The notes under the pieces were generated by a model. It ran no database searches, had not been told where the DNA came from, and worked only from the letters and a program-made list of their open reading frames with translations. A program made the translations under genes and the position numbers. From NCBI RefSeq assembly GCF_006345805.1, contig NC_043020.1:14384001-14448000 (forward strand): 64,000 bases of DNA. Reading direction: 5' to 3'. This document shows, in pieces, positions 13,564 to 61,000 of this stretch (the first letter of the stretch is position 1; every line of letters begins with the position of its first letter). Origin of the DNA: Octopus sinensis. Lineage: Eukaryota.

Positions 13564-14823
13564 TGTGGGGATGAGATGAATGGAGGGAAAGGGTCAGCGA
13601 TGTCAATGGTTGAGAGGCCTTCCTGAAAGAGGAAGTGTGTGGGGATGAGATGAATGGAGGGAAAGGGTCAGTGATGTCAATGGTTGAGAGGCCTTCCTGA
13701 AAGAGGAAGAGTGCGGGGATGAGATGAATGGAGGGAAAGGGTCAGTGATGTCAATGGTTGAGAGGCCTTCCTGAAAGAGGAAGAGTGCGGGGATGAGATG
13801 AATGGAAGGAAAGGGTCAGTGGTGTCAATGGTTGAGAGGCCTTACTGAAAGAGGAAGAGTGCGGGGATGAGATGAATGGAGGGAAAGGGTCAGTGATGTC
13901 AATGGTTGAGAGGCCTTCCTGAAAGAGGAAGAGTGTGGGGATGAGATGAATGGAGGGAAAGGGTCAGTGATGTCAATGGTTGAGAGGCCTTCCTGAAAGA
14001 GGAAGAGTGTGGGGATGAGATGAATGGAGGGAAAGGGTCAGTGATGTCAATGGTTGAGAGGCCTTCCTGAAAGAGGAAGAGTGTGGGGATGAGATGAATG
14101 GAGGGAAAGGGTCAGTGATGTCAATGGTTGAGAGGCCTTCCTGAAAGAGGAAGAGTGTGGGGATGAGATGAATGGAAGGAAAGGGTCAGTGGTGTCAATG
14201 GTTGAGAGGCCTTACTGAAAGAGGAAGTGTGTGGGGATGAGATGAATGGAGGGAAAGGGTCAGTGATGTCAATGGTTGAGAGGCCTTCCTGAAAGAGGAA
14301 GAGTGTGGGGATGAGATGAATGGAGGGAAAGGGTCAGTGATGTCAATGGTTGAGAGGCCTTCCTGAAAGAGGAAGAGTGTGGGGATGAGATGAATGGAAG
14401 GAAAGGGTCAGTGATGTCAATGGTTGAGAGGCCTTCCTGAAAGAGGAAGAGTGTGGGGAAGAGATGAATGGAGGGAAAGGGTCAGTGATGTCAATGGTTG
14501 AGAGGCCTTCCTGAAAGAGGAAGAGTGTGGGGATGAGATGAATGGAGGGAAAGGGTCAGTGATGTCAATGGTTGAGAGGCCTTCCTGAAAGAGGAAGAGT
14601 GTGGGGATGAGATGAATGGAAGGAAAGGGTCAGTGGTGTCAATGGTTGAGAGGCCTTACTGAAAGAGGAAGAGTGTGGGGATGAGATGAATGGAGGGAAA
14701 GGGTCAGTGATGTCAATGGTTGAGAGGCCTTCCTGAAAGAGGAAGAGTGTGGGGATGAGATGAATGGAGGGAAAGGGTCAGTGATGTCAATGGTTGAGAG
14801 GCCTTACTGAAAGAGGAAGAGTG
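13564..14823. repeat. Minisatellite, 17 tandem copies of a 74-bp purine-rich unit
   Basis: Unit GTGTGGGGATGAGATGAATGGAGGGAAAGGGTCAGTGATGTCAATGGTTGAGAGGCCTTCCTGAAAGAGGAAGA; GGGG anchor at 13567 + 74n up to 14751. Confidence 0.97.
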
Positions 14824-26700: not shown

Positions 26701-29700
26701 TTCAGCTACTTGCACATTAATTTCTTGATCTGATCAACTGGAACCCTCATCATTGTAAATAACAGAATGCCAACAATGCATTGAAGTATCAGTAATTGAT
26801 CTAGCTGGACTTCTGGTGGCTATTTATTAATGCCTTTTAGGAATTTTTTTTTTTTTTTTGTTAACAACTTGAATCTTCAAATCTTATGCTTTTATGAACC
26901 ATTTTTTAGCTTTGAGAAAAACATTTTTATTCCTAATTATTCAATGATTTAAGTCATTAAAACTTTTTTTTGTTCTTTCTGACTATTTCTGAAAAATCCT
27001 GCTAAGGAGTATAGGTTCCAAAGAGTTTTAACGGACATAAAGTTCATTTTTATTGCCATTAACAAATTTTTCCAATGGCTGTTGACAACCAAATGATATA
27101 CCACTAATTCTAACTTTGCTTGAATTATTCTTTCTTTACAATTGTCTACAATTTAAATCATTTGTGAATTATTAAAATAATTTATTTTCAGTTTAGAGGA
27201 TGTCTTGATGCAAGAAGGAAAATTATATCTTGTCTTTGAATATTTGTCAATGGATCTGAAGAAATATATGGATTCTATACCAAGTGGAAAATACATGGAT
27301 ACTAAACTTGTAAAGGTACATTCTTTTATTGATTTTCATGATTTTGCACATATCAGGCAGCACTCCAGTTACCGTCGTCCTTTAAGGTCCATTTTCCAAG
27401 CTGGTATGGGTTAGACGGTTTGACAAGGGTTGGTAAACCAGAGAGCTGCACCGGGCTCCACTCATCTGTTTTAGCTTGGTTTCTATGGTTGGATGCTCTT
27501 CCTAGTGCCAACCACTCTACAGAGTGTACTGGATGCCTTTTACATGTCACTGGCAATGACCACGATTCACAGCAAATCACCAGGTTTTAAATAAACTACT
27601 TTCTAGACTTTCATTATTGAAGATAGCTTTATACTGTTGTGATTGAAATAAGAGTGCTTGAGTAGAAGTTTTTTCTTTTTTTTAAATTCTGGACATGATG
27701 TCCATCTCATAATTCAAAATAGAACCCTCTCAATCCCACATTCATTTTTGGCTTGCCTCAAGGTTCTGTTACATCTCCCACACTATATCTAATCTACATC
27801 AAAGACCAGCTCACTGTTATCACTAACTAACTGCTCCTGTGCAGATCATTCTCACCTGGCCAACAAACCACTACATCTAACCTTTTCATAAGCAACTTAC
27901 TGCTAAAACTTCTCTTTATAAATATTAAACCCTCATGACCTTCCATAATGAATGCATATACAACATAGTTATGAGTAAAACTAGGCTGCTGTCTCTTTAT
28001 GACTAGTAACGTGAATAGTTACTGAGCATTATACAAACCCTCATGTAGCACTGTTATTCATGTAGGAGGAGCACCATGGGTTTTTTTTAAATATTAGTAG
28101 CTATTATTATTATTATTATGGCTGGCAGAATCATTAGCGTGCCAAGCAAAGTGCTTAGTGGCATTCAAATTCTGCCAAGGTTAACTTTTCCTTTCATCCT
28201 TTCAGGGTCGATAAAATAAGTACCAGTTGAACACTGGACGTTGATGTAATTGACATACCCCTTCCCCAAAATTCTTGACCTTGTGCCAAAATTTGAAACC
28301 ATTATTATTAAGACATTGAGCTGGCAGAATCATTGTCGGACAAGATGACTAACAGTATTTCTTCTGATTCGTTATATTCAGAGTTCAAATTCTGCCGTGG
28401 TCAACTTTGTCTTTCATCCCTCTAGTGTAGTCAATAAAATTAGAATACCAGTAAAGTGGCAAGCTGAGAGAATTGTTAGCATGGGGAAAAATTGCTTAGT
28501 GGCATTTCATCTGTCTTTATGTTCTTCATCATCAATGTTTAGCATCCGCTTTCCATGCTAGCATGGGTTGGATGGTTCAACTGGGGTCTGGGAAGCCAGG
28601 AGGCTGCACCAGGCCCAGTCTGATCTGGCAATGTTTCTACGGCTGGATGCCCTTCCTAATGCCAACCACTCCGTGAGTGTAGTGAGTGCTTTTTACATGC
28701 CACCGGCACAGGTGCCAGGTGAGGCTGGCAAATGGCCACGATCAGATGGTGCTTTTTGCGTACCACCGGCACAGGGGCTAGGCGAGGCTGGTAATGGCCA
28801 GGCTGACAGAGTTCAAATTCTGCTGAGGTTGACTTTGTCTTTTACCTTTTCAGGGTCAATAAAATAAGTATCAGGTGAGCACTAGGGTTGATACAATCAA
28901 CTTACCCTCCTCTCCCAAAATTACTGGCCTTGTGCCAAAATTCGAAACCATTATTATTGTTGTTAGAGTAGTTGGGAGGGTAGGATTGTAGTATGTTAAA
29001 TATTTTTTGTTATTTGTATTTCAACTTATTGGTTTGCAGAGTTACCTTCATCAAATTCTGCAAGGAATTCTCTACTGTCACCAGCGCCGACTCCTTCATC
29101 GTGATCTGAAACCTCAGAATTTACTTATTGATACATCTGGAACTATTAAATTGGCTGACTTTGGTTTAGCCAGAGCATTTGGTATTCCTTGCCGTGCTTA
29201 CACTCATGAAGTAAGTAGGGTTTTTTTTTACACATTTATTTTGTAACATTTTTATTGTGTTGAAAATGATCTTCTGGAAGTTTTATTCTTTTAATGATGA
29301 GACAAAGGGCAATGAGAACACGAGATGGTACCATCACATTTCCAACAAAGAACTGTGTGCATGCACACATCAGCTTGTAACGACCACCCTCATAGCTATC
29401 TGGTACAAGCATTGGTAGGGACAAGTCCTACCATTCAGTGCAGTAGCTGCAGGCTGGAAGGGCCTTGTGGCAGCCCCGACACCAGATGGCTGAAAGTGAT
29501 TGGAGAAGATCTCTAAATGTTCAACGTCACCTTGGAAGATGCAGAGGGGCTGGCATGGGACTCCAGCAATGGAGAACACTGGTGGACCCAGTCAGCTCTC
29601 TGCGTGATGACATCCCTGGGACCACTAACCTGGGGTGCCCACAGCCTCTTCAAGCAACATCTTGAAGTGAAGCGAAACAGTTTCATTAATTTGGTTGTTG

Positions 29701-32700
29701 CAGCTAGGAATTTAGGGCTAATTAACAGTCTAATGTGAAAGTACATGGTCTGTGATTGGGCTATTGGACTCACAATTATAAGGGCATGGTTTCAATTCCT
29801 AAATGGGATGGTGCACTGTGCTCTTCATTTCTCATAGTTCCTGATCACTCAGTTGAATATGGATTGTCTGCTATAGTCGGTTCCCTCAGCCAATGTGAAG
29901 AACCATTCTGCCTAAAATTATTAAATCTATTAGCCTAAATTTTTTGCATATGCGACGTCAGTGGCCCTAGATAGTTAGATACAGCACAGTGGTGGACGAC
30001 GTGCTGGATACGTATACAGAACAACACTACGTTTCTCTTTTCACCCAGCTGTAAGGTATTTAAGTATATAATGAACAAATCTTGTGATGACCAAAGAAGT
30101 GAATATCACAGTTATTCAAGTTTTGCTGAAAACAGCAAATTGATGATTTTAATAGCATTTTTGTTGACCTTTTACTACCAAATAAATGCAAAGAATCAAG
30201 CTTATGTTAATTACTAACATTTCATGGAGTTAGTCTAACAAGCAAAAAGGTTTTCTTATTCAAAGAATTAGATCTTTCATTCAGGTAACTGCTCAAATAT
30301 CAACCACAACCTTTTATCTAGAAAGTTAATTAACCCTTTTGCATTCGGGTTACTCTGTCAAATGTAAAGCTTATTTATTCACATTGTTATTGAATAAATT
30401 ATGCATTATCTTATAGTGTTGAGGTTTTGATGAAGATTTTTAGAATAACAGTGTAGGGTAGATGTGAGAAGTCAAATCTGGCCAGTTTTTAAATAAATTA
30501 AGGTAGAGTATTTGGGTTGGATATGGCTGGTTAAAATGCTAAACAGTTAATGATTGCTTTATCTCATTTCTATTGAGAGAGTAAGGCTGTCTTTATTCTA
30601 TAAAAGTATTTGATTTTTTTTTTTTTTTTCTATTAGGTTGTTACTTTATGGTATCGTGCCCCAGAAATCCTACTTGGTTATCAACGCTATTCCACAGCCT
30701 TAGACATTTGGAGTATTGGTTGTATCTTTGCTGAGATGGTAACAAAACGACCTCTTTTTAACGGTGACTCTGAAATTGACCAGTTATTCAGAATATTCAG
30801 GTAACTTTTCTCTTTTCCTCCTTTTATAATTATCATTATGATTATTATTTGTGCTGCTCTTTCACTCAATAATAATATATAATGAAATTATTGTATACAG
30901 TGCTCAGGTGCACCACAACTTGTCAGAAAGTGCATATAAAGTATATGTAGTAATGTACAAATGTCTGGAAAGCGAACAATGTATGAGTCAGATACAGGCT
31001 TGTGTGTGTATGGAGGGGAGAAAATCAGGTGTAGTGTTGGCGAATCTCAGGAAGCATGGCAGTTTTGAAGGATGCAGTGCTCAGACAACTAACAACTGAT
31101 GCCATAAGTTTGTTCCATGCTTCAGCAACTCTCAGCGTGAAAAAATGTTTCCTAAAGTCATGGGAGCTGTGCCGTTTTCTGACTTTGTAAATATGTCCAT
31201 ACTTTCATTCTAGCAAAGTTTCTACGAGATCTTGATATTTCAGTTGGTTGGATTATTGAGATTGGATCAAGTATTTCTCGTGTTTTGATGATTTATATAT
31301 CACAATTTACAATGGACCAGTCCTCCTGACTGGTCCATAGGTAGAATTCTCAAGTGCAATGTTTACATGGCTGGATATTCCTTGGTCAGTTTGGAGTGAT
31401 AGCTACATCTGAGAGAAAATGTTGTTTTAAAGAATGGTACAGTGGTTGTGCATTTGGCACAGGTAGTAGAAATGGTTTAGTCATTTATCACTGGCTTTGT
31501 TTACAGCGTACACATTCTAAAATATTTGCAGCATTTTTCCTACAAAACCATTGATAACATTAGCTTACCCTAAAAACCTTTTATTGTATTCTATGAATAC
31601 ATTGGTTCATGAATGTAATCTTAAAATTTCCTCACCAACTCTGTCAAGTGATAAACAATACAAGAAGGTTGTCATGCTGAAATATTCATTGATAACCTGG
31701 TTATTATTGTGACTACTTGAGTCCTGAGTAAGAAAGAGGAAGACAACCTAACTAGATATCACTCACAGATCTGCTGTGTCTGTAGCTGAGAGCTATTACT
31801 TCATGCTTCAACATGTTGAATTATGTAGCATGCTATGTAACACTGGATATTATTTTATTTTCAAATGTGCAAATTCACTGGTTAATACTTTGGTTGTTAT
31901 GTTGAAATATTCATTGATAACCTGGTTATTATTGTGGCTACTTTTGCCTTGAGTAAGAGAAAGACAACCAAACAATTAGATGTCACTCACAGATCTGTTG
32001 TTTCTTTTAACCTGTTCCTCAGAAGCTGAGAGCTATTACTGTGCACTTCCATATGTTGAATTGTATAGCATGCTATGTAACATTAAATATTGCTTAATTT
32101 GAATTTTCACTAAATAATACTTCTTCGGTAGAGGCATTGTTGCTTGGTTAAGACATTTGGTTTACAACCATGTGGTTTTAGGTTTGATCTCACTTTGTGA
32201 CACCTTGGGCAACTATAATCTCAGGTTGGCCAATGCTCTATAAATAAAATTTGATAGACAGAAAGAGTATGGTAGCCTGTTATGTATTTATAATGTGTGT
32301 TTTTTTATTTCTTCTGTGCTGTCACATTGATATTGCTCATAAAGAATGGTGAAATACAATATCTGGAAAATACACGATGCCTGGTATCAGGAACTGGCTA
32401 TAGAATATTGGGATCTTTTCGGTTTGAACGGCAGTTTTTTTCTAGCGGTGTCATATGAAATTATGACCCTAGTATCGATCTATTGCATTTCAATCTGTTT
32501 TAGGGTTAGGTGTGGAGGGAAGAGTATCTTTTTTTCTTCACAAATGTAAATAAACCCAATCTGTTTCTTAAATGAGGGACATATTCATACGGCACAGAAT
32601 GTTTTCACCTCAATAGACGGTCATTGATTGGTTGAAATTGCCGAAAAGCAAGAAATTAAAGACCAAATATCTTACAAACTATAGAATTTTCTCAATAAAG

Positions 32701-35577
32701 CCAAGAGAAAAAAGTGTCTTATAAACACATTCTACCAGTATACAAAGCTTAAAATTTTTCAGTTACCTAGAAATTATGTTAAAAACTGCCGTTCAAACTG
32801 AAAAGATCCGAATATTGTCTCCTCTAAGTCATGTCTGCATGAAATGAATGGGAAAAAAAATGTAAAAACAAACCATTCCCATGTGAAGTGGAGATTGTCT
32901 TGTAAGTCAGACAATTCATCATCATCATCATCAGCCTGTCTTTCATGCTGGCTTGAGCTGGACAGTGCGGCAAGCCGTAGAGCTGGACTGAGCTTTATTT
33001 TCAATGGCTGTAACGAGGCTGTAGCCTGAGGCTTAATTTAAGCTTTTATCTTTTACTTGTTTCTGTCATTTGACTATGGCCATGCTGGGGCACCACCTTG
33101 AAGTATTTTTTACTCCAATGATTTGACCCCCAGTATTTATTTTCTTTCAAGCCTTGTACTTGTTCTGTTGGTCTCTTTTGCCGAACTGCTAAGTTACACA
33201 GATGTAAAGACACCAACTTCAGTTGTCAAGCAGTGGTGGGGGACAAGCACCGACACACACACACACTTGTATATGATGGGCTTCTTCCAGTTTCCATCTA
33301 CCAAATCCACTCACAAAGTTTTGGTCAACCAAGACTATAGTAAAAAAAACACTTGCCCAAGATACCATGCAGTGGGACTGAACCCCAAACCACGTGGTTA
33401 GGGAACAAGCTTCTTACCACACAGCCACACCTGCACTTAATAGATATGATATTCATGCTTTTTCTTTTTATCATGCAGGACTTTATCAACCCCAAATGAA
33501 GAATCTTGGCCTGGAGTAACAAATTTCCCAGATTACAAAGCATCTTTCCCACAGTGGAAAGTCAACAATCTGGAAACATCTCTTAAAACTGATGTTGCCA
33601 TGGAGTCTGCCGGTCTTGATTTGTTACAGGTCAGTGTGAAATGAGATTTTTTTTTTTTTTTTTTTTTTTTTTTGCGTGATTAAGATTTGATCAAAGTCGG
33701 TGACAGAGCAAGAGTTACCGTTCTTTCTTTGGCTACACATGAAGTAATACATGTAATATATTGAACCTCTTTTTCTACCAAAATATTTGCTGCACCATAG
33801 AGATAGTTTCCCTGACAGGCCAACTAGGTTAAGCTTCTCACTACCAGTGAACTTAAAGTATCACTGTACGTATGTCTGTGTGTGTATATATATATATATA
33901 TATATTAAATCAAATTAGAGACAAAACCACTATTATGCAAATCAAACAAAGAAAGACTTAAGCCAATACATAAAAATTTATATAAATTAAAATTTAACAT
34001 ATGAATAACCACTACGATCGTTTCGTGTCAGCACATCTTAGACATTCTTCAGGTGGTTTCAAAACCTTCTTAGCGATCTTTCTTTGTTTGATTTGCATAA
34101 TAGTGGTTTTGTCTCTAATTTGATTTAATATAATATTTTACTATAAAATTGGATTCAATCTTAAATCTGATTTTTCCTTGTAAATTTGGATTTGTTCCCT
34201 AATATTTATTATTATATATATATATATATAATTATTTGAGGGAATATTAATTGAAACTTACAGGGGAAAAAAAATTCAATTTAGAAATGCTAAATCAAAT
34301 TTCACACAATATAATATATATATAAAAATTAGAAAAAGAACAACTTTTATCAATTCAAAATGAACAATTAAATTACACCATCTAGAAAATTACATATGAT
34401 AGAAATATTGAAATAACAATAAAATATCAATAATTAAGTAAATTGCAAAAAAAAAAATAAAAACGTATATAATTGGTAAAATAGCAATTATATACGTTTT
34501 TATTATTTTTTTTTTGCAATTTACTTAATTATTGTTATTTTAATTTTAATATTTCTATTATATGTAATTTTCTAGATGGTGTAATTTAATTGTTCATTTT
34601 GAATTGATAAAAGGTGGTTTTTTTCTAATTTTATTTATTTATATATATATATAGATCTTGGGCTTGAAATGTAAAAGGCTTTTCCATTCTTTCCAAGTGT
34701 TAAACTAATGCACCTGCTTGTTATTCCTACACTTGTCTTCATCTTTTGTGTTCTGTAAATTTGGACTATACATATATATATATGTATATATATGTAATCT
34801 ACCTACCTACCTGTCTTTTGTGTCATACTAAGAGAAATAACTAATAGAATAAGAAACAGTTAGTAGTTTTAGTAGTGGTGGTGGAGAAAGATAGAGAAAT
34901 GAAATATTAAAAAAAGCAGAAGATAAAATGGTAAATGGTGATTATGATGTTGTTTGTAACAACTTTCATCTCTTTTCCATCTTCCTCTATCTTACCTGGT
35001 ATTTACCATTGTCTCCACCATTGCAATGATAAGGCAACTACAGTTCCTTATTTGTGCTAATTTCTTTTACTGTATTGAATTTTAAACCTTGGTGCAAAAA
35101 TCCCTTTTGCTTAACCCTTTAGTATTTAAACCGGCCATATTCGGCCAAAATATTTAATCTGTTTTATGTTCAAACTGACCAGATCCAGGCTCTCACACCT
35201 ACCCTACAATGTTAATCTACATTAAGTAATTACACCATCAAGATCTTGAAGGTATGAGATAATGCATGATTAATTCAAATCAATGGGAATCAATAAGCAT
35301 TATGTTTGATAGAATAATCTGAACACTAAAGGGTTAAGGTTACTTTTGACTTAGAAACTTCTATTTGAAGTGTTTTGTTTAAATCTGACATCATCATTGT
35401 TGTTGTCGTCATCTCTTGATTTGCAATTACTCCTTTCTGTGACTAATCATTAATGTTGTTCCTTCTTTCTAATTCCAGAAAATGTTGACTTATGACCCCC
35501 ATAAGAGAGTGGCTGCCAAAACTGCAATAAACCACAGCTACTTCAATGACTTAGAAAGCCTCTCTCCTGTACTCTAG
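23736..35577 (+). CDS. CDK1: Cyclin-dependent kinase 1 (cdc2), complete spliced CDS: join(23736-23772,25690-25846,27192-27315,29040-29210,30637-30800,33479-33629,35479-35577); 903 nt = 300 aa + stop
   Basis: Hand-spliced translation [21 protein letters not shown]...[11 protein letters not shown]...HRDLKPQN...DFGLARAFG...[14 protein letters not shown]...[12 protein letters not shown]...[14 protein letters not shown]. All introns are GT-AG with consistent phases. Exon lengths 37/157/124/171/164/151/99 match the vertebrate CDK1 layout as I recall it (37/157/124/171/164/142/99). Confidence 0.97.
24425..24787 (-). mobile_element. SINE family A in a CDK1 intron (another at 25920-26305 -, older copies at about 3880-4230, 6225-6605, 33045-33436)
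   Basis: Reverse complement of family A. Confidence 0.78.
25690..25846 (+). CDS. CDK1: CDK1 coding exon 2 (GTYG Gly-rich loop with T14/Y15, VALK, PSTAIRE helix)
   Basis: Acceptor ctcacag|GC, donor AG|gtgagc; 157 nt. Confidence 0.97.
27192..27315 (+). CDS. CDK1: CDK1 coding exon 3 ([41 protein letters not shown])
   Basis: Acceptor ttttcag|T, donor AAG|gtacat; 124 nt. Confidence 0.97.
29040..29210 (+). CDS. CDK1: CDK1 coding exon 4 ([11 protein letters not shown], activation loop with T161)
   Basis: Acceptor tttgcag|AGT, donor GAA|gtaagt; 171 nt. Confidence 0.97.
29390..29660 (+). mobile_element. Degenerate RTE-like LINE 3' fragment
   Basis: Translates across frameshifts to [34 protein letters not shown], resembling the GRPxxRW...DRxxWR C-terminus of RTE reverse transcriptases. 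Confidence 0.5.
30637..30800 (+). CDS. CDK1: CDK1 coding exon 5 ([10 protein letters not shown]...[12 protein letters not shown]); missing from the ORF track
   Basis: Poly-T acceptor tattag|GTT, donor AG|gtaact; 164 nt. Confidence 0.97.
32411..32809. mobile_element. 8-bp-TSD MITE (GGATCTTTTC termini, internal TTAGGG-like motifs); another copy at about 16793-17219
   Basis: TIR GGATCTTTTCGGTTTGAACGGCAG / CTGCCGTTCAAACTGAAAAGATCC; TSD GAATATTG at 32403-10 and 32810-17. Confidence 0.8.
33479..33629 (+). CDS. CDK1: CDK1 coding exon 6 ([27 protein letters not shown]...GLDLLQ)
   Basis: Acceptor tcatgcag|G, donor CAG|gtcagt; 151 nt, 9 nt longer than the human exon as recalled. Confidence 0.95.
34007..34058 (-). 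ncRNA. Type I hammerhead ribozyme motif, antisense to CDK1 intron 6
   Basis: Minus strand AACCAC-CTGAAGA-ATGTC(taagatgtgct)GACAC-GAAA-CGATCG-TA-GTGGTT: stem I AACCAC/GTGGTT, palindromic ACGATCGT stem III, GUA triplet. The base of stem II is an A.C mismatch. Confidence 0.65.
35115..35333. mobile_element. TTAA-flanked piggyBac-type MITE in the last CDK1 intron
   Basis: TTAA|CCCTTTAG...CTAAAGGG|TTAA; nearly identical to 15470-15688. Confidence 0.8.
35479..35577 (+). CDS. CDK1: CDK1 terminal coding exon ([32 protein letters not shown])
   Basis: Acceptor attccag|AAA, TAG at 35575-35577; 99 nt. Confidence 0.96.
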   Translation, partial: KMLTYDPHKRVAAKTAINHSYFNDLESLSPVL

Positions 35578-45789: not shown

Positions 45790-46918
45790 GCATATTCAAT
45801 ACAACAGATACATGTGCAAGACTTGCCTGGGGATTCAATCACTGGAGTTTGCTGAAAGCCTTTCTTTTGGAATTCAGAAAGGTATGTACAAATAACTTCT
45901 TTTGCACACACACAAATTCAGTTGTCTTCTACTATAGCCTTGGGTTGACCAAAGCCTTGTGAGTGGATTTAGTAGACAGAAACTGAAAGAAGCCCATTGT
46001 GTCCAGCATGGAAAGCGGATGTTAAGTGATGATGATGTGTGTATGTCTTTGTGTCTATGTTTGTCCCCTACCACCAATGATTGCTTACAATCCCTGTAAC
46101 TTAGTGGTTCAACAAAAGAGACTGACAATACTAGGCTCAAAAGAGTGTCCTGGAGTTAATTTGTTCTACTAAAACCCTTCAAGGCAGTGCCCCAACATGG
46201 CTGCAGTCAAATGACTGAAACAAGTAAAAGATATAAGATATATATAGGAGAGGAAAAATTATAAGGCAGAATGCTAAATTGAAAGTAAATTTTAATAAAA
46301 ATGGGTGTATGAAAATTTACTTTCAATTTAGCAATCTGCCTCTCCTATCATTTCTCCACATGCGGTTAACACAACCCCACTATTTACTGATTTATATTTA
46401 TATATATATATATATATATATAAAATGAGATAGGGGTTGTAAATTCAACCCTCCATGGGATAACATATATCCAATATACTGCTAGAGAAGTACCCAACAA
46501 AGCTAATACATAAATGTTAAAAATTGCGATGCAATTAATTCATTTACTGTATTAGGTGGGCAAAGGTAAAATTATTTTTACCGTAAATTAATAATACAAA
46601 ATGATAAAATGGAGAAATATATCTAAATCAATCATCAACTATCAGATATTAAAGTATTGATTCGGTATTATCTGATAGTTGATGATTGATTTAGATATAT
46701 TTCTCCATTTTCTCATTTTGTATTATATATATATATAAACTCCTAGAGTAATAGGTTTTGTAGCACAAATAGGTGAAGGGATTTTATGAAAATAATGTTC
46801 ATAGTAGAGACAGAGCAAGGTGAAACAATGATGTTATGTTGTCTAAAAAATGTCAGTTTGTCTTAATGATAAATTAACTATTTTGCTTCATTTCAGATTG
46901 CCAAATATCATCATCATC

Positions 46919-47008
46919 ATGTCACAGTTATTGTTTGTTGAAGATGTTCGAAGTTGGGAGTCAACAAAATGTCAGCAGGAGCTTGACCATGCTCTCCCAA
47001 AGCTTGTT
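46919..47008 (+). CDS. FIRRM: FIRRM coding exon 1 (exon starts 46897); followed by a U12-type donor GTATCCTTT
   Basis: Acceptor tttcag at 46896, ATG at 46919, 30 codons, donor GTT|gtatccttt. Confidence 0.88.
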
Positions 47009-50000
47009 GTATCCTTTAGTTTTCATTAAATTTAACACAGCTGATATGATCGGTTAATTTTCTATGATACTTAATTGAAAATGTATTCACATGCAAAAGC
47101 TTGAAAGAAATTAAGCTAGCATACCTCGCTGGATGTACAATGTCAGTGTGCACATATGACAGAGTTTAAGTGTCTTAGAAAAATTGGGTATAAGAGACAT
47201 CAGACCTGGTGTGCAAGGGAGAAGACTGTGCGGGTATGAACATGTATGCGTATGTATGAGGACTGCTGCGTAAAAAGTGTCAATCTCTAATTATGGGACC
47301 TTTTCCTTTTGAACAGCACATGTCAACACAATTTCTAGTTAACTAAACACTTTAAAACTTCGTATACTGGTAGAATGTGTCAAAATAAAACATTTTCTTC
47401 TCTTGGCTTTCTTGAGAAAATTGTAATTTGTTTGTTTAACGTAGTTTAATTTTTCGACTTTTAACCAATGAATCGTCTCTATTTAGCTAAAATCATTTGC
47501 TGCATCTAAAACTGAGACAACATCCTGTCACTAACCCTCAACCTAACCCTAAATTTTTTTTCTTAATTGTTACGCGTGTAAAAAAAACAAAAGCAATGGA
47601 AAATAATTTAAACAATTAACAAACAAAATAATTCTATAATTTTATACACACGCGTAACAATTAAATTAATTTAACAATAAGGAAAAAAAAATTTAGGGTT
47701 AGGTTGAGGGTGAGGTAACCCTCAGTTTTAGACGCAGCAAATGATTTTAGCTAAATAGAGGCGATTCATTGGTTAAAATTTGAAAAATTAAACTACGTTA
47801 AACAAACAAATTACAATTTTCTCAAGAAAGCCAGGAGAAAAAAAGGTTTTATTTTGACACATTCTACCAGTATACAAAGTTTTAAAGTACTTTAGTTAAC
47901 TAGAAATTGTGTTGGTGTGTGCCGTTCAAAAGGAAAAGATCCTAATTATGGAGGGAACCAGTGGAAGAAGTGAAACAAAAGTAGTCAAATTTGATCTTCA
48001 GTTGTTGAGTCACATGGAGGCAATGACAACTGAGACTTCTGGCAATTTGCTGTGCCTGAGAAGACAATGTCAGGCTAAGTAAAATCGTGGTTGTGGCCAG
48101 TGCTGGTGACATGTAAAAGACACCCAGTACACTCTGTAAAGTGGTTTGCGTTAGGAAGGGCATCCAGCCATGGAAACCAAGCTAAAACAGGTGACTGGAG
48201 CCTGGTGCAGCTCTCCGACTTATCAGCTCCAGTCAAACCATGCAACCCATGCCATTATAGAAAACAGACATTAAATGATGAAGATCATGATGTATTCAGT
48301 TATGTTGGAATTTAGTCACAATCAGTATTGTATTAAGATGTATTGGCCAGTGGTATAACTAGAGTATGTGCCACTTGGAGAAACCTTCGAGTTTGTCCCA
48401 CCCCCACCTCATCCCAGGTTTATACATCAGACCCCAAAGTGCCACCCCAACCCTTAACTACATTACTGGTATCAGCCAAATTAAAAGCAACAACACTCTT
48501 CAAAATTCTATACACTTCACCTTTCCTGGTATTAAACACTTTGGACTCCAGTTATTTAAAGAGAAACAGATAAAAAAAAACCCCAGAATTTCTGCAATAC
48601 CCAAATATCAAGCCATTATTACTGCAACTCATAATTATCCAAAAGACAATTCTCCTAATTATAAAATAGTTGTTAAGAACATTGTTATGAACAGTTGAGT
48701 TATTTTCCTTAATTTACTCCAGTCTTGCTTTTCCAGTGATATCAGTGTTGATAGTAAAGTTGGTAAGTAAAATATTTTGTAGTGATTAGTCAGTTCTTGT
48801 AGACGCCAGCTGGTAGTTAGTTTCTTGAGCCCAGAAAGATGGAAGGTAAAGTCAATCCTGGCATCATCCTGATTCCAAAAAGGTATAATATGTCTATGTA
48901 GGGCAAATATAGACTGAAATACAGGGGTCCCAGACAGACAGAATTTCACTTTTATTGTTATAGATAACTAGTCCAGGAGCTTTTTGATGCCACCTTGAAT
49001 TTGTAGTGATGTCTTATAAAGACACTAGATTGACCCAATGTATTTCAACATAGCAACTGGATTGGCTCAAAACCTAGAGGAATAGAGATACAACCACATT
49101 GATTACATCTTGATGTCATCTAGTACTTTTGTACACCGGGAACATTGGAAAACTGAGCGGTAGTAGTAGTAGCTGCATATTGTTATTGGCAGGATTTGTA
49201 GACAGACATAGCCATGCGTTATACACATTCCCTCGTCTCTAACCCTAACCCAAATTGTGTGACTCAGAAGCTGAAATTTCTTTGTCAGTTTGTTTCTTAG
49301 GTTTTCTCAAAGTTTCTAACTTACAACATCACAGCATGTATCAGAATTGTGTGAACTGATGGTAACTTAGAGCCTCAAAAAGCAGAATTTAACAAATTTT
49401 GGCACAAGGCCTGAAATTGTGGGGGAAGGGTTGAGTCAATTACTTTGACCCCAGTGCTCAACTGGTACTCAATTTAGCGACCCCAAAAGGATGAAAGACA
49501 AAGTCAACCTTGGCAGAATATTTGAACTCGGAACATAAAGATGGATGAAATATCGCTAAGCATTTTGCCCAGCATGCTAATGATTCTGCCAGTTGGCCAG
49601 AATATTGGAGGGAGTTAATTGTTAACCTTGTGGTTTGTATCAAAATACAAATGTCTACAACCACTACTACTACTACTACCATGCAGTGGTCCAATTTTTT
49701 TTTTTTTTATGCAAATAGAATCTTTTATATCAACTAACTTGGTGATTCCCAAACTTTTTTCAGGTTGTGGCACTCAGGCCACATTCCTTCCCCCGCTCCA
49801 CAACCCACAAATGTAGTTCACTTTCTGAAGCAACTTCAAAACAACTATTTATTTCACTAATAGAACTTAACACAATTAACTCACTATTTTGTTTTTTACA
49901 CATCCACCCACCCCCACTTTGGGCCACCCCATTACTTTTCTTCAATGGCCCCTGGATCTGTCCACTCTCCTTAAGGGTAGGGCAGTACTACCCACTTTGA

Positions 50001-50578
50001 GAACCACTGAATTAGCTTACATTTATGAGAGAAAAAGATGTGTTTTTCTTGTTTTATTTCTAAGTTTCTGTGATTTCATGTTTATTTGGTTCTTTTTTCA
50101 GGGGTTTTGAATATTATTTGTACATCGTTTCTGCCTCACATGAAGCTTGCAGTTATTGAGACAAGACTCTTTCACAACATAAGTTCAAAGGTAGGGGATT
50201 TAGTAGCAGTTCAAAAAAATTGAAGGAGCAACTCTACCCAACTGATAAGGGAGCCATTTGTTATTTACCCCAGTTTCTTTGACCTTTAAACATTATCAAC
50301 TCAGTATTTCTAAATGCTTATCATATAATAATCATTTCCTTCAGTTTGACTAATCAGCAGCAACTGCAGAAGGCCATATAATCTGTAATTGTTTCTCATT
50401 TCAAGATAAAAAGAAAATTGCTGTTTCCTGTAATTTCTCAAAAATTATTCAATGTTTTCAACCTTCTATAATTTATTTATTTTTCTTTTGGTGAAGGATG
50501 GATGGGTTACCATTGTTGAAGGATCTGTCACGCACTAACACACACACACTCACGTACACACATACATATATATATATA

Positions 50579-50808: not shown

Positions 50809-52597
50809 ATATATGTATATATATATATAGGCGCAGGAGTGGCTGTGTGGTAAGTAGCTTGTTTACCAACCACATGGTTCCGGGTTCAGTCCCACTGCGT
50901 GGCATCTTGGGCAAGTGTCTTCTGCTATAGCCCTGGGCCAACCAATGCCTTGTGAGTGGATTTGGTAGATGGAAACTGAAAGAAGCCTGTCGTATATATG
51001 TATATATATATATATGTGTATGTGTTTGTCCCCCTAGAATTGCTTGAGAACCGATGCTGGTGTGTTTATGTCCCCGTCACTTAGCGGTTCGGCAAAAGAG
51101 ACCGATAGAATAAGTACTGGGCTTACAAAGGATAAGTCCCGGGGTCGATTTGCTCGACTAAAGGCGGTGCTCCAGCATGGCTGCAGTCAAATGACTGAAA
51201 CATGTAAAAGAGAGTATATATATATATATATACATGCACCAGTGTTTGTGCCACATAAAAAGCACCCAGTCCACTTTGTAAAGTGGCTGGCATTAGGAGG
51301 AGCATCCAGCTGTAAAACCCATGCCAAAACAGACAGTGGAGCTTGATGCAGTCCTATGGCTTGCCAGCTCCTGTCAAATCATCCAACCCATGCCAGCCTT
51401 GGAAGACAGATGTTAAATGATGATGACGAAAAACCAAAATGCTTTTACATCTGTTTTTCCATGTTGGTATGGGTTGGACAAGTCTTTTCCAGCACAGCAT
51501 CTCACCACTTGTTGCATCTCATCATCATTGATCCTTGTGAAGTCAAATATTCCAAAGTCACACTTCAACACTTCTCACATTTTTCTGTGCCGGTGGCACA
51601 TAAAAAGCACCATCTGAACGTGGCCGATGCCAGCGCCGCCTCGACTGGCTTCTGTGCTGGTGGCACATAAAAAGCATCATCTGAACGTGGCTGATGCCAG
51701 CGCCGCCTCGACTGGCTTCTGTGCCGGTGGCACATAAAAAGCACCATCCGAATGTGGCCAATGCCAGCGCCGCCCTGACTGACTTCCGTGCCAGTGGCAC
51801 GTTAAAAGCACCAACCGATCGTGGCCGATGCCAGACTCCCCTGGCACGTAAAAAGCACCCACTATACTCGTGGAGTGGTTGGCATTAGGAAGGGCATCCA
51901 GCTGTAGAAACACTGCCAGATCAGACTAGAGCCTGGTGCAGCCCCTGGCTTCCCAGAACCCAGTCGAACCGTCCAACCCGTGCTAGCGCGGAAAACGGAC
52001 GTTAAACGATGATGATGATGAATTTATTTCAATCTTAGACTTTCATATTTCCATACAAGCACAGTCTTTGAATTTGTGTATGATGGCCGAGTCCTCTGAC
52101 ATCCAGTTTTTCTCTTGGCTTCTTTATTTCGGCTGGCTAACATTGCACATCAAGTGGTGCCTTTATCTTCTATCTTTTACTTGTTTCACCACCTTGAAGA
52201 ATTTTTAGTCAAATGAATCGACCTTAAGCCTAGTACTTATTCTATTAGTCACTTTTGCTGTATCACTAAGTTCCAGGGATGTAAATGTACAAACACCAGT
52301 TGTCAAGTGGTGGTAGGGGACAAACACAGACACAGATATATATATCTGTAAAATAATATGTGACAATTATTCGGTAGCCAAGATAAAACTGTGTTTCAGA
52401 TGCCGAGGTGGAAAACCACAACACCATCTCTTTGGTTATCTGGCCATCTGAAAAACGCTATGAAAAAAGACCGTTATACAAAAGGAAATTACTGTGTTAT
52501 AGTCTGCTACTTATATAAAAGCGCTAATTCAATGACCGCTAATTAAAATTTTCTCTATTGAGGTCTCTTTCTTTCTTTTGTTATCTTACCGTTTTTA

Positions 52598-52631
<34 letters not shown>

Positions 52632-55600
52632 GATCTTTCAGTTTCTGTCTACTAAACTCACTCAGAAGGCATTGGTTGGACTGTGGTAATAATAGAAGAC
52701 ACTTACCCAAGGTGCCACAAGTGGGACTGAACCCAGAATCATGTGCTTGGGAAACAAACTTCTTACCACACAGCCACCTGTTTACTTCATTTCTTCCTAA
52801 CCTTCACATATCCTCATTCAGTGACCATGCATCACACATAAGTATGATATTGCATGGTAGTAGCAGTGTCATACTTATGTGTGATGTCTGTCTGTCTTTC
52901 AGGTAACATCACAGAGAGAGAAACCTTTTTATTACCAACAAAAGTAACAACTCTCATATTCCACCTTCTTATTCTTGCTGCTATTCTGTTGACACATTTA
53001 CCTCCATTGCTAATTTTGAGTCCATCATCATCATCATTTAGCGTCCGCTTTCCATGCTAGCATGGGTTGGACGGTTCAACTGGGGTCTGGGAAGCCAGAA
53101 GGCTGCACCAGGCCCAGTCTGATCTGGCAATGTTTCTACGGCTGGATGCTCTTCCTAACGCCAACCACTCCGTGAGTGTAGTGGGTGCTTTTACGTGCCA
53201 CCGGCATAGTCAATGACTTCTAAACAAGTTTTCTGGTCACTTGAAAGACTTCATCTCATGGTTATTCTTACTTCCTATTTTAAATATTTTACCTTTTAAA
53301 ACAAGACCAACAACTTATTTTATTAGAATACAAATTGTAAGCCACACATAATTCGTGAACTTGATAAGCCAATGAGAGAAGGAGCAGCTTGATCTTCTTA
53401 AAATAACATATTATTTTGATAAAGGAAGGCTACATTACATAAGGAAAGGTCTATTCAAACAGGGTTGGCTTTTGATGCTCTTCCTGGCACAAACAGTCCG
53501 ACTGTGACTCTTTTCATCTAGGATGTAAAGTGGTTGGTGTTAGGAAAGGCATCAAGCTGTAGAAACCATGCCAAAATAGACAGTGGAGCCTCTGGCCTTA
53601 CCAGCTTCTCTCAAGCCATCCAATCCATGTCAGCATGGAAAACAAACATTAAATTATGATGGTAACATGGCCCACAGCTGCCTTTAGTAGAGTCTTCTCT
53701 GTGTTGTAAGTATTTAAGGAAGGTCTCTGGTCTAAGTGCCCTCACCTCTTTAGTGTCTGCTTCCCTGAAATACATTTTGACTGCTGCTCTTTTTCTTGTA
53801 TTAAAACACAAAAAAATGCATCTTTTCTAGGGACCAGCATCTTAATCATCATCATTTAACGTCTGCTTTCCATGCTAGCATGGGTTGGACGATTTGACTG
53901 AGGACTGGCAAACCAGATGGCTGCACCAGGCTCCAATCTGATCTGGCAGAGTTTCTACAGCTGGATGCCCTTCCTAACGCCAACCACTCTGAGAGTGTAG
54001 CGGGTGCTTTTATGTGCCACCGACATGAGGGCCAGTCAGGCAGTACTGGCAATGGCCATGCTCAATGGTGTTTTTTACGTGCCACCTGCACAGGAGCCAG
54101 TCCAGTGGCACTGGCAACGACCTCGCTTGAATGTTTTTCACATGCCACTGGCACAATTGCCAGTAAGGCGACGCTGATAACAATTACGTTTGAATTGTGC
54201 TTTTTACGTGCCACTGGCACAGAAGCCAGTCAGTTGCTCTGGCAGCGATCACGCTTGATTAACTATACTATAATTAACAATACAATAATAACATTGTGTA
54301 ACAAAATTTTTATTTCTGTCTTTGGTCAGTAAGTGTTATCTCCTATTTACTTCTATCTAGAAATCAATAGAAATCATTACTATTCCCTTCAAACTTTGCT
54401 TTTCTGACCTGAACATCAATGTTTTGAAAACTGACCTATTTTCCATTACATTTCAGACAGATTCAGCACTGGGTTGCTGAAGCAGAAATATCATTATAAC
54501 TGGTATTCTGCTCACTACCACAGATTTTCTTGTCAGTTGTTTGACCTTTACCACTTGAGTATGTCCCTTAATGGCTGACAATATGTGCATCTCAGATCAT
54601 GAGCAAGAGTAGTTGGGGAGGACCATAGCCATGTGTTGAGAGGGATTCTTTTAGGGTTTGAATAGATGTAACAAAAGCAAAGTCTGAAGGAAATATTAAC
54701 CATTTTCCATACTTTTTAGGAGTAAGCAAGTAGGAAATAACTGTTGCTACCCAAGGAAAAAATTGTATTACACAGTGTAATTAACTATACTATAATAATT
54801 AGCTATACTATAATTAGTTTAATAACAAAATTACTATTCCATTTCTTGCCAGTATTAAAGGTAAGATATAAATTACTTTATAGTTTACCAAAAAGCAAGA
54901 TTTAGGGTTTTGAAGAATTACAGTTTCCTCACATTTTGTAGAAGATAGGGTTTCATTTATTCTCTTTGGAACAGTAGAAATATTGCAATTTCCAATTCCT
55001 CATACATTGAAAATTACAAAGCCTAATTGAATATTCCGTCTGTGTTCCAGATAAATGATTTGTTGGCAGAGATACTAGAAAATGCTAAGCAAATTCAAGA
55101 AGTTACAGAAAAGTCATCTGAATGCCACCAAGACGTTGTGGCTATGCTGAAGGTAAGTTTCCAATATATAATCAAAAGTGACGAGCCAGCAGAATCGTTA
55201 GCGTGCTGGATGAAATGCTTAGTGGTATTTCGCTCAGCATGGCCATGTAGTAAAAAATTTGCTTCTCAACCGCATGGTTCCGGGAAAAAAAAAAAAGAAA
55301 AAGGCGGCAAGCTGGCAGAAACGTTGGCACGCCGGGCGAAATGCTCAGCGATATTTCGTCTGCCGCTAGATTCTGAGTTCAAATTCCGCCGAGGTCGACT
55401 TTGCCTTTCATCCTTTCGGGGTTGATTAAATAAGTACCAGTTATGCACTGGGGTCGATATAATCAACTTCACATGTTTGTCTGTCCTTGTTTGTCCCCTC
55501 TGTGTTTAGCCCCTTGTGGGTAGTAAAGAAATAGGTATTTCGCCCATTGCTATGTTCTAAGTTCAAATTCCACTGTGGTCAACTTTGCCTTTCTTCCTTC

Positions 55601-55754: not shown

Positions 55755-57977
55755 GCCAAACAGAATTTTTAGAACACTGGAGAAAAATACCTCATGGTAT
55801 CTGTTTTGGTTCTTTAACTTCTGTGTTCAAATTCCAAATTGGTCAAACTTTTGGAGTTGATAAAATAAGTACCAGTTAAATATTGGAGTCCATTTAATAA
55901 TCAGTGCTGATCCCTTAAATCTAAGACCCTATATTTATGTTAAAAAGTTTTCTTTTTTTAATTAAAAAAATTTTTTGTTTTTATATATTATTTACATTTG
56001 ACGGATGTTTGTCCTCATCTTGTTTGTTGTGAACACAACATTTCGGCTGATATACCCTCCATCCTTCTTCAGGTGTCTTGGGGAAATTTCAAACCTGGGT
56101 TCTCATTCCTAAGGTAGTTTTCAATGTTATTATTATTATTATTATTATTCAGGTCACTGCGTGGTATCAAACTTGGAATGTTGGAGTTAGTAGCCCGTGC
56201 TCTTAACCAGTATGACATGACCACGGGTATATGGCGTAGTGGTTTAGAGCACGGGCTGCTAGCCCCAAGATTCTGAATTTGGACAATAATAATACCATCG
56301 AAAAATACCTGAGGAATAAGAGCCCAGGTTCGAATTTTCCCTAAGACACCTGAAGAAGGCTGGAGGGTATATCAGCCGAAACGTTGTGTTAACAACAAAA
56401 AGATGAGGACAAATATCCGTCGAATGTAAATAATGTACATAATTCCTCATCTCTTACATATAGAACTGTATTTTTATTTTTATTTTTATTTTGTATATTA
56501 ACAGCTTGCTTTAAATATCGTGGAATCTACAGAGAGTTGCATGAAATATGTGTGCGGAGCCAGTGAACTTGTCGACTTGGAAAATATACATTCCTTGCTC
56601 TCTTCTGTCCTCAGAGTTTTAACACAATCTTATGAACATTGTAAAGTAAGTTCAGTTTAATTAAATATTTTTAGGGTTGCAATGTTCTGCAAAGTTTGAG
56701 CAAGATGCTCCATTCTAACACCAACTAATCAGATGAGAACTGACGGTGATCCCTGCTTTTTAGCTAAGTTCACTGAAGTATGCTAAGGGTTATACCTTGT
56801 GTTTGCTTTTAGCTGAGTTTGAAGTATTATGGCAGTTAAAAGTCTTTCATTTGTACCATTGTTGATGACCAATGTTTTGTAGGAGAGGTTTCAAAATTAT
56901 TGTGCCCGACTGACCTCCGTGCTGGTGGCACGTAAAAAGCACCATCCGATTGTGGCCGTTGCCAGCCTCGTCTGGCACCTGTGCAGGTGGCACGTAAAAA
57001 GCACCATCCGATCGTGGCTATTTGTCAGCCTCGTCTGGCACCTGTGCAGGTGGCATGTAAAAAGCACCCACTACACTCTCGGAGTGGTTGGCGTTAGGAA
57101 GGGCATCCAGCCATAGAAACACTGCCAGATCAGACTGGAGCCTGGTGCAGCCTCCTGGCTTCCCAGACCCCGGTTGAACCGTCCAACCCATGCTAGCATG
57201 GAAAGCGGACGTTAAACGATGGTGATGGACACTATTCCTATTGGTGAAGGCATGGTTTTGTAGATATAAAGGTATAGATGTGGCTGTGGTTAAGAAGTTT
57301 GCATCCCAACCCTATGGTTATGAGTTCAGTCCCACTGTGTGTCACTTTGGCCATGTACCTTCTATTCTGGCCTCAGACTGGCCTAATCCTTGTGGGTGAA
57401 TTCGGTAGGCAAAAACTGAAAGAAAACCATCGTGGGTGTATGTCGGTGTGTCTCCTTATCTTCACATTGTGTGATAGTTGTAAATGAGTGTCACTGTCAT
57501 ACAAGCAGTGTAATTCATTTCCAGTATTTTGCAAAAATGTATCTGGGCATGGAAAAACCTTACCCTGCTTGGAAACAGGTGAGGGTGGTAAAAGAAAAGG
57601 CAAGCACAGAAAAGAGAATATTGAAACAATTGTATTTTAAGGGCCCCTGAAAAATTTTGCTTTAGATGTATGTATTTGGATGTATTACAAGAAACAGTTA
57701 GGTTCTTTCTCAAATGTTTTACATAGTTCAACCTACACAAGTGAATGTGTGAGAAAGGAGAATAGTAATTTCGAAAGAAATGTCTATAAAACTAGTTTCT
57801 AAACATAGAATGACTATGGGGGTCCACCAGAATAAGATAGTAATTGAAGGGGTCCATAGATAAAAAATGATTGAGAACCCCAGATGTTGATTAAAACAGA
57901 AAAAATGATACCTTGACACACACTTGTTTCTGATTATTTTTATGTATAGCTTAACAAAGCTATAATATTGATAATAA

Positions 57978-58016
<39 letters not shown>

Positions 58017-61000
58017 CATACATATAATAATAATATTAGGGAGTATAACTCCAAACTTACAGGGAAAAATTCTATTTAGTATTAAATCAAATTTCACAAT
58101 ATAAATATATGAAAAAAAAAAATATATATATATATATAATATATATATATATAATATTAGGGAGTATAACTCCAAACTTACAGGGAAAAATTCAATTTAG
58201 TATTAAATCAAATTTCACAATATAAATATATAAAATATAAATTAGAGATAAAACCACTATTATGCAACTCAAACAGTGATATACATAAACCAAACATAAA
58301 TAACAAATAAAATATATTTTAATAAAACATATAACTTGTAACTAGATCTCAAAAAGTATAAAATGAATGGTCAATATATAATAAGTAATAAGTAAAAAAA
58401 CTTATATATTGACCATTCATTTTATACTTTTTGAGATCTAGTTATATGTTTTATTAAAATATATTTTATTTGTTATTTATGTTTTGGTTTATGTCTATCA
58501 CTGTTTGAGTTGCATAACAGTGGTTATATCTCTAATTTATGTATTATACACACACACACACATATGTTTTTACTTGCTCCAGTCATTAGACTGTGGCCAT
58601 GCTGGAGCACTGCACTAAAGGATTTTTAGTTGAATGAATTGACTGCAGTATTTATGCTAATTCATTTTTTAAAGGCTGATGATTATCCTATCAGTTTCTT
58701 TTGTTGAATATGTGAATATTGGCTCTTTTTATAAATAACTGACATTCCTAAATGACAACTGCTGAAACATGATGTAGAAGAACTAGACTTCTTTTAATGA
58801 TATTAACCATGTCTGCGTAACTGAAATATTCTCTACCATTTGTTCCAGGAGAGTCCTACCATTTATGGTGACCTGTTGCCACTTTTATCTGATGTTTTGT
58901 CCAGTTTCTTCAAAAAGACTCACCAACTACAAACTGTAACTATTGGCTTACCTTTTCTCACATGATTTCTAAAATTCCTTTTATCTTTCAATGTTATATT
59001 CTTGTAATTATAGAGATAAGCTCTTTAAACACTTTCAACACTGACAATTACTACATGACTGATATTTCTCTTTAGTTTCTAATCCATTAAGATTAAAAGC
59101 AAATTCACCATCACCAGATTAAATGCTAATTTAACAGATAAATTTCCCCAGACACTGTGGGTATCTTTTCATTTTGGCATAATTGGAACTAGTAATACAG
59201 CTTAGTGTTTTACCCAAGACACACAAGCATGGCCCAGTTTTTAAGAAGTTTGCTTCCTATCCATGTGGTTTTGGGATCAGTTCCACTGAGTGGCACCTTG
59301 AGCTAGTGTCTTTTACAACAGCTCTGGGCCAACTAAAACTTTTGAGTGGATTATATGTGTGTATAAGCGAGAGATCAACAAAACTCCTTGTAACACCAAA
59401 TATGAACTGAAGGCAAAGATTATGGCAGCATTCACCAACTTAAACAAGGAGAGAGTCTAGAAGAGTTGCAGGAGATTCTGAAGTTGTCTGGCGGTCATGT
59501 TTGAAGCCAATGGTGATTTTATTGAATACATTTACTCTTTAGTATTTCAAGATATTTTTGTGTAATGTTGATAAATAGATCTGCTAAAATGTCGGTGTTA
59601 TTTTCATTTTTGCATAATTTAGACAACAGCTTATTCATTGCACCCTGTACTCTTTTACTTGTTTCAGTCATTTGACTGCGGCCATGCTGGAGCACTGCCT
59701 TTAGTCGAACAAATCGACCCTGTGACTTATTCTTTGTAAGCCCAGTACTTATTCTATCGGTCTCTTTTGCCGAACCGCTAAGTGACGGCGACGTAAACAC
59801 ACCAGCATCGGTTGTCAAGCAATGCTAGGGGGCAAACACAGATACACAAACATATACACACACATACATATATATGTATATACATATATACGATGGGCTT
59901 CTTTCAGTTTCCATCTACCAAATCCACTCACAAGGCTTTGGTCGGCCCGAGGCTATAGTAGACGACACTTGCCCAAGATGCCATGCAGTGGGACTGAACC
60001 CGGAACCATGTGGTTGGTAAGCAAGCTACTTACCACACAGCCACTCCTGCGCCTTCAAAATATGTTTGATATTTTTCATCATCTTGGAAGGGTACATGAA
60101 AACAATGACCTGGAATTGGCAATGAAAGTTATCTAAAATTTATAGAACTGTTTCTGAAAAATTAAACTCCAAATTGAATGGGAATTTAAAGTTATACTGT
60201 GAATATTAAAATGTATTTCTTGGTTTGGTTAATGTTAATCTTGTTTCTTGTTTTCAGACAACATTATGCTGTTTGGAAAAAATAAACATCAAGTCAACTG
60301 AACAAGATGTTGTTGATCTTTGTTCAAGTAAGTCGATATTCTCAACTCCTATTTACTTCAACTGGTATAGATTTAATGAAATTGTAATCTGTTAGATATA
60401 ATATACTGAACCTCAGCAGACAATGTGTGTGTGCATGTGTGTATGCTACATAAAAAGGATCTGTACTGGTGCTATGTTAAAAGCACCGAGTACACTCTGT
60501 GGAGTGGTTAGCATTGGAAGGGCATCCAGCTGTAGAAACCAAGCCAAAACACAATGGAGCCTGGCACAGTCGTCTGAATTGCCAGCTCCGGTCAAATCGT
60601 CCAACCCATGCTAGCATGGAACATACTCATTAAATGATGATAAAGATGTGTGTACATGTGGCGATATATATATTACATATATATATATATATATATATAT
60701 ATAGAACAAACTTACTTAGAAATGGATGCGTGCGTTCCGTCATAAAATAAATTAATAAATAAAATAAAACATATGCATATATAAATACATATATGTACGT
60801 ACCTACCTCTACATGTATATATACATGCATATATGGGTACAGGACACCAAAAAACGTCGAACACTATGAGAAACGAAAACATAAACACAAAATCAAAGAA
60901 AAGGACATTTTTCTTAAACAACGAAAAAATAGAGTACAGGACATACAATACAAGGAAAATTCCCCTTCTTCAGTCACCTCTGTTTCATCTACTCCGCTTT

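Follow-up and report, generated by a model that had tools for sequence, protein, structure and literature searches.

The interval between positions 47009 and 48722 on the plus strand of the window (the whole 64-kb stretch of Octopus sinensis DNA analysed here) is very likely a U12-dependent GT-AG intron, and the first coding intron of octopus FIRRM/C1orf112. We regard it as the orthologue of a minor intron already known from vertebrates, and as an old but ordinary member of its class, as conservation of this depth is typical of minor introns.

The gene in the window is the FIRRM/C1orf112/FLIP orthologue, a member of the PF14868 family. A search seeded with candidate exons returned P0001, an Argonauta hians 'C1orf112-like' protein and the FIRRM of Anguilla rostrata. 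P0001 is the annotated octopus FIRRM protein (923 aa, Pfam PF14868/DUF4487), and its gene lies on Octopus vulgaris OX597837.1 (GCA_951406725.2), a locus to which the window is 92-98% identical. By exact spliced mapping, the first 225 residues of P0001 fit the window exactly through the junctions given below, and cluster look-ups show that its relatives bear the names FIRRM or C1orf112 homologue in many animals. Word-indexed protein searches, for which full-length P0001 and an alignment of 30 sequences served as queries, found three cephalopod proteins only. Pfam searches of the single-exon translations, which come from short exons, gave nothing meaningful, searching PDB sequences for the 73-aa N-terminus yielded a chance match only, and Rfam and tRNA scans of the 64-kb window found neither an snRNA gene nor anything else. 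The exon model that follows is based on the deposited annotation, on conservation, and on L004, a spliced transcript from a different cephalopod.

46919 to 47008, plus strand: FIRRM coding exon 1, beginning at the ATG at 46919, 30 codons with a phase-0 end at ...LPKLV (exact spliced P0001 mapping and translation).
47009 to 48722, plus strand: intron 1, predicted U12-type, GT-AG subtype, 1714 nt (signals, P0001 mapping, and eight other species with an intron of this class at this position).
48723 to 48762, plus strand: 40-nt microexon, 13 residues plus 1 nt, phase 0 to phase 1 (P0001 mapping, translation, conserved length, L004).
48763 to 50101, plus strand: intron 2, U2-type, ttg/GTAAGT ... 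ttcttttttcag (P0001 mapping and splice-site scoring).
50102 to 50190, plus strand: FIRRM exon 3, 89 nt (P0001 mapping; equal length in octopus, Argonauta, abalone and eel).
55051 to 55152, plus strand: FIRRM exon 4 (P0001 mapping).
56505 to 56645, plus strand: FIRRM exon 5 (P0001 mapping).
58849 to 58935, plus strand: FIRRM exon 6 (P0001 mapping).
60258 to 60327, plus strand: FIRRM exon 7 (P0001 mapping).
61194 to about 61278, plus strand: FIRRM exon 8 (start mapped; end set by analogy with O. vulgaris L001, whose exon 8 has 85 nt).

Comparison with O. vulgaris L001 puts exon 9 past the end of the window. When 46919-47008, 48723-48762 and 50102-50190 are joined, they form an open frame identical to the N-terminus of P0001. 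Skipping the 40-nt exon causes a frameshift, with stop codons within a few codons on translation, and retention of intron 1 stops translation after six extra codons. The initial annotation had proposed that the length of this exon fixes the frame to exon 3, and the open frame, the match to P0001 and the stops that follow from skipping all agree with that proposal. It had also described the remaining FIRRM introns and those of CDK1 as ordinary U2-type, which holds for the junctions in the window: the other seven FIRRM donors and acceptors are U2-type, with GTAAGT-like donors and pyrimidine-tract acceptors, and so are the junctions of CDK1, a gene upstream of FIRRM on the plus strand at about 25.7-35.6 kb, with RTATCC at none of its exon edges.

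The ends of intron 1 read differently. Its donor, GTATCCTTT at 47009-47017 (plus strand), stands directly 3' of codon 30 (GTT, phase 0), and the bases after the end of exon 1 at 47008 are GTATCCTTTAGT. This donor fits the RTATCCTT 5' splice site consensus, has 0 mismatches to RTATCCTTT, and is a poor fit to a U2-type donor with U1 complementarity, matching CAG/GTAAGT at 3/9 positions where the remaining six donors of FIRRM in the window match at 5-8/9. At the other end, the putative U12 branch-point sequence TTCCTTAAT occupies 48705-48713 (plus strand), and within it TCCTTAAT at 48706-48713 (plus strand) shows 0 mismatches to the TCCTTRAY branch consensus. The branch A, at about 48712, would be the second A of the motif, 10 nt from the last intron base at 48722; the distance is 9-19 nt in the eight orthologues, and the range for U12 introns is roughly 8-20 nt. 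The 3' splice site, CAG at 48720-48722 (plus strand), is the first AG 3' of the branch site, and the intron end reads ...GTTATTTTCCTTAATTTACTCCAG/TCTTGC, with 80% pyrimidine in the last 20 nt. The GT-AG termini are among those used by U12 introns (GT-AG or AT-AC, rarely AT-AA and others), and the intron is in phase 0. The exact coordinates, the U12 donor and the branch point about 10 nt before the AG are as the initial annotation had given them. Intron 1 also harbours a hairpin of about 650 nt, an MITE-like inverted repeat at 47296 to 47942 (no strand assigned), which is passenger DNA and no part of the splicing signals.

How specific are these signals? By itself the donor 9-mer is no rarer than expected by chance, as RTATCCTTT has 3 matches in the 64-kb window against about 2 expected. 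Two of them, at 21249 on the minus strand and at 62081 on the plus strand within FIRRM intron 8, lie off exon edges and were rejected as chance matches. The plus strand of the window holds two RTATCCTT sites only, and a single TCCTTRAY with a correctly spaced YAG; one of those donors and the lone spaced branch motif coincide exactly with coding exon edges. We called an intron U12-like if its donor had at most 1 mismatch and a correctly spaced branch motif had at most 2 mismatches. Among 153 mapped FIRRM introns, every intron 1 was called, and beyond these only a single coral-specific intron situated towards the 3' end of the coral gene; this puts the rate among introns other than intron 1 at 1/145. 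In the eel and amphioxus FIRRM genes, the sole sense-strand RTATCCYY is the intron 1 donor.

A full-library profile-free search yielded 247 FIRRM relatives, from which loci were taken across a spread of phyla, and each protein was mapped onto its own genomic locus. The amphioxus junction was read by inspection (the intron ends in AA), and the eel gene was mapped exactly to residue 520, past which its annotated model is probably flawed, with the remainder scanned for U12 donors. The first intron reads as follows in these genes.

Octopus (window) and O. vulgaris: 5' end GTATCCTTT; branch and 3' end TTCCTTAAT-N9-AG; termini GT-AG.
Argonauta hians: 5' end GTATCCTTT; branch and 3' end TTCCTTAAC...CAG; termini GT-AG.
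Haliotis cracherodii (abalone): 5' end GTATCCTTC; branch and 3' end ACCTTAAC...CAG; termini GT-AG.
Desmophyllum pertusum (coral): 5' end GTATCCTTT; branch TCTTTAAC, 19 nt before CAG; termini GT-AG.
Penaeus vannamei (shrimp): 5' end ATATCCTTT; branch and 3' end GCCTTAAC...AC; termini AT-AC.
Acanthaster planci (starfish): 5' end ATATCCTTG; branch and 3' end TCCTTGAC...AC; termini AT-AC.
Anguilla rostrata (eel): 5' end ATATCCTTT; branch and 3' end TCTTTAAC...AC; termini AT-AC.
Branchiostoma belcheri (amphioxus): 5' end ATATCCTTT; branch TCCTTAAT, 11 nt before the terminal AA; termini AT-AA.

In all 7 of the 7 machine-mapped species the intron follows LPKL[VI], at one column of a MAFFT protein alignment and in phase 0, and by inspection it falls at the same residue in amphioxus (LPKLI/AG). 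The octopus window and eight others, nine species from five phyla in all, thus show U12 signals at one shared codon and phase. The FIRRM locus of the sponge Corticium candelabrum is intronless and so is uninformative on the ancestral state. The initial annotation had suspected an ancient conserved minor intron and had suggested comparison with mollusc and cnidarian orthologues; both the age and the class stand up, with the same position and class in Argonauta, Haliotis and Desmophyllum. Judging by codon, phase and class, octopus intron 1 is orthologous to the vertebrate FIRRM U12 intron, and by the same comparison it is at least as old as the cnidarian-bilaterian ancestor, its termini having changed between GT-AG, AT-AC and AT-AA along the way.

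A U12 intron of this gene has been described in human. C1orf112 is among 18 human 'twintrons' (Janice, Jakalski & Makalowski 2013, Biol Direct 8:4; PMC3564746), with U12 sites kept from human to stickleback in 32/37 genomes and alternative U2 sites confined to apes (PMC3564746), and it is also given as having an external U12 intron and an internal U2 intron (Akinyi & Frilander 2021, PMC8329584). The initial annotation had placed human C1orf112 among the minor-intron genes, which is confirmed by PMC3564746 and PMC8329584, neither of which gives the position of the human U12 intron. We infer that position from eel: because the single U12-type donor of the eel gene is at this site, the human intron is taken as the probable orthologue of octopus intron 1. 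The human 853-aa reference protein, which we take to start with MFLPHM, would begin in what corresponds to the middle of octopus exon 3, in which case the U12 intron of the human gene presumably lies upstream of its annotated start. Octopus and vertebrate genes belong to the same PF14868 family, and the only U12-type intron of the eel gene comes after codon 30, in phase 0, and is followed by a 37-nt microexon, the position seen in octopus; the two differ in their termini, which are GT-AG in octopus but AT-AC in eel (as also in starfish and shrimp).

The human case raises the question of whether octopus intron 1 might also serve two spliceosomes, such that U2-type sites nested within a U12 intron or overlapping it compete with it and the choice of spliceosome switches FIRRM between productive and unproductive mRNA. 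We consider this improbable. Besides the listing of human C1orf112 with external U12 and internal U2 introns, it draws on a U2-like cryptic acceptor, tcttgcttttccag, which lies within the microexon at 48723-48736 and whose AG (48735-48736), if used, leads to an immediate stop (TGA), and on the 1.7-kb length of an intron with repeats, a possible source of cryptic exons. But the human U2 sites are kept among great apes only (3/19 and 4/19), so that the twintron state appears to be recent rather than ancestral. These internal sites have no visible counterpart in octopus, a plausible U2-type donor at or near 47009 was not found, and an alternative isoform of the octopus gene did not turn up.

Less probable still, in our view, is an ordinary U2-type GT-AG intron, removed by the major spliceosome, with ends that look like U12 signals by chance. 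It has GT-AG termini and a pyrimidine-rich 3' end, which the major spliceosome could perhaps use, and the donor 9-mer occurs in the window near the chance expectation, as noted above. Against this, the donor matches the U1 consensus at just three positions, the donor and the branch motif both fall exactly at coding exon edges, and U12-like calls are nearly confined to intron 1. The species comparison weighs on the same side, as U12 signals recur in all nine species and 4/9 of these introns have AT-AC or AT-AA ends, which are not normally termini of the major spliceosome. Reading intron 1 as U12-type also places it well among canonical GT-AG U12 introns (U12DB, intronIC, MIDB), which it resembles in its RTATCCTT donor, in a TCCTTRAY motif 10 nt from its end, in a donor only weakly complementary to U1, in being a lone minor intron among U2-type introns, and in deep conservation with subtype switching. 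It differs from them in its phase 0, in its pyrimidine-rich 3' end and in the microexon of conserved length that follows. About 22% of minor introns are in phase 0, the least frequent phase (PMC10639083), and octopus intron 1 is thus in a minority phase. Octopus sinensis was itself among the species of that pan-eukaryotic survey of conserved minor introns, which finds minor introns relatively abundant in molluscs (PMC10639083).

The microexon measures 40 nt in octopus and likewise in abalone, amphioxus and coral; that of Argonauta has 43 nt and that of the eel 37 nt. In starfish (129 nt) and shrimp (210 nt) it forms one exon, in frame, with the exon or exons behind it, and the U2-type intron 2 is absent; this fusion shows that the segment is coding. 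Transcript L004, from RNA-seq run SRR23936179 of a cephalopod whose protein is 50% identical to that of octopus, reads LPKLI-TYFRDGNDLHHGI-GILKVIC, with 13 residues at the microexon site. The donor 3' of the microexon is strong in most species, being GTAAGT or GTGAGT in cephalopods, abalone and eel, and GTAAGT in octopus. That the microexon and its flanking intron boundaries are an annotation artefact, the first intron running instead to a different acceptor from 47009 or from another donor, strikes us as extremely improbable: microexons are often mis-annotated, but here the frame is kept only if exactly 40 nt are included, six other species have a microexon of 37-43 nt in the same place and two more have it fused in frame, and the spliced cephalopod transcript carries its residues.

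If intron 1 is U12-type, as its signals suggest, it would be removed by the minor spliceosome, in which U11/U12 bind the 5' splice site and branch site cooperatively and U6atac then replaces U11. The U11/U12 di-snRNP would recognise the branch sequence jointly with the rigid 5' splice site, with U12 on TCCTTAA, and U11 and later U6atac would pair with the ATCCTT of the donor. The 3' splice site would then be the first AG, 10 nt past the branch A; with AC ends counted as well, the site used would be the first AG or AC at 10-20 nt. The 40-nt microexon is probably defined across the exon, through U1 bound at its strong GTAAGT donor. With a U12 3' splice site on one side of a 40-nt exon and a consensus U1 site on the other, coupling across the microexon is plausible, and there is precedent for it, as U12 splicing is enhanced when U1 binds a 5' splice site downstream (Wu & Krainer 1996, SCN4A, summarised in Olthof et al. 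2021, PMC8034651). The octopus arrangement is like known coupling by exon definition that links the minor spliceosome with the major one in that a U12 3' splice site precedes a short exon and a strong GTAAGT follows it, and differs in that the exon, at 40 nt, is below typical exon-definition units; the coupling may apply here by analogy. Because retention and skipping both break the frame, productive FIRRM mRNA should depend on minor splicing. A regulatory, rate-limiting role of intron 1 in FIRRM expression is a hypothesis put forward in the initial annotation. FIRRM is a partner of FIGNL1 and removes RAD51. One could speculate that the U12 intron and the 40-nt microexon form one unit, preserved for over 600 million years, which ties FIRRM production to minor-spliceosome activity in dividing or meiotic cells via exon-definition cross-talk across an unusually short exon; we think this unlikely, and offer it tentatively.

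General knowledge of minor introns is unchanged by these results, and a regulatory role in FIRRM expression, if true, would be of moderate interest. The locus provides a clean and checkable example of a minor intron that can be recognised from raw sequence. For octopus, FIRRM gains a correct 5' gene model, including a microexon of the type that gene finders often miss. For the family, the comparison traces the minor intron known from vertebrate C1orf112 to the cnidarian-bilaterian ancestor or earlier, and documents one site at which a phase-0 minor intron has persisted while switching among GT-AG, AT-AC and AT-AA.

Sequences resembling splice sites lie on both sides of the octopus FIRRM U12 intron (47009-48722). 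Upstream of the FIRRM ATG, an acceptor-like ttttgcttcatttcag at 46882-46896 ends 22 nt before the start codon and suggests an untranslated exon upstream that would be spliced to the ATG exon; if so, the U12 intron may be intron 2 of the transcript and not intron 1. On the downstream side, the first 14 nt of the 40-nt microexon (48723-48736, tcttgcttttccag) resemble a U2-type pyrimidine tract and acceptor, and splicing at the AG of this stretch would lead at once to an in-frame TGA.

The U12 intron itself carries two repeats, listed here with related copies and with a minisatellite found elsewhere in the window.

Repeats in the U12 intron and elsewhere in the window
47296-47942: MITE-like hairpin, about 650 nt, inside the U12 intron
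48095-48290: dispersed repeat, about 190 nt, in the same intron
27375-27563, 51239-51426, 57041-57221, 60463-60640: example copies of the dispersed repeat
13564-14823: minisatellite with a G-rich repeat unit of 74 nt, present in 17 copies that match at 97%

The inverted arms of the hairpin (52, 168 and 31 nt) are nested and 90-97% complementary. TAACCC-like telomere-motif repeats lie at its centre, and one of its arms has copies in the window at 17085-17219 and at 32674-32809, the latter within the span of CDK1. The dispersed repeat occurs at no fewer than 14 other sites throughout the window, in both orientations, with 73-80% identity between copies; it looks like a SINE-type element, and related repeats recur many times at the FIRRM locus of O. 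vulgaris. The minisatellite accounts for the GC-skew spike at 14-16 kb.

Coral FIRRM has 32 introns, whereas that of the sponge Corticium candelabrum (L007, 5001-7778) is one uninterrupted ORF of 925 codons, which points to a retrogene or to wholesale intron loss. In the eel Anguilla rostrata, the protein model beyond residue 520 does not fit the locus (L003) with canonical junctions (about 8598-8867), and past that residue it runs into an unconserved Ala/Gly/Arg-rich stretch; together these probably reflect an error in the deposited gene model. Introns of amphioxus (Branchiostoma belcheri) and of the coral Desmophyllum pertusum with U12-type features are listed next.

U12-type intron of amphioxus FIRRM and possible U12-type intron of coral FIRRM
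L010 2091-2417: amphioxus orthologue of the octopus U12 intron, AT-AA termini
L006 24839-25002: second U12-like intron of coral, GTATCCTTC ... TCCTTTAC, the latter 18 nt before the AG

None of the other mapped species has an intron at the position of the coral one, which may be either a minor intron restricted to that lineage or a product of faulty annotation. The amphioxus intron has a perfect donor, ATATCCTTT, and TCCTTAAT 11 nt from its end; its AT-AA ends are of a rare type. In starfish (L005, 2709-2837) and shrimp (L009, 2488-2697), the U2-type intron behind the microexon is absent and the microexon is joined to the downstream exons, while the U12 intron is present in both. FIRRM in these two lineages has kept its minor intron and lost the ordinary neighbour.
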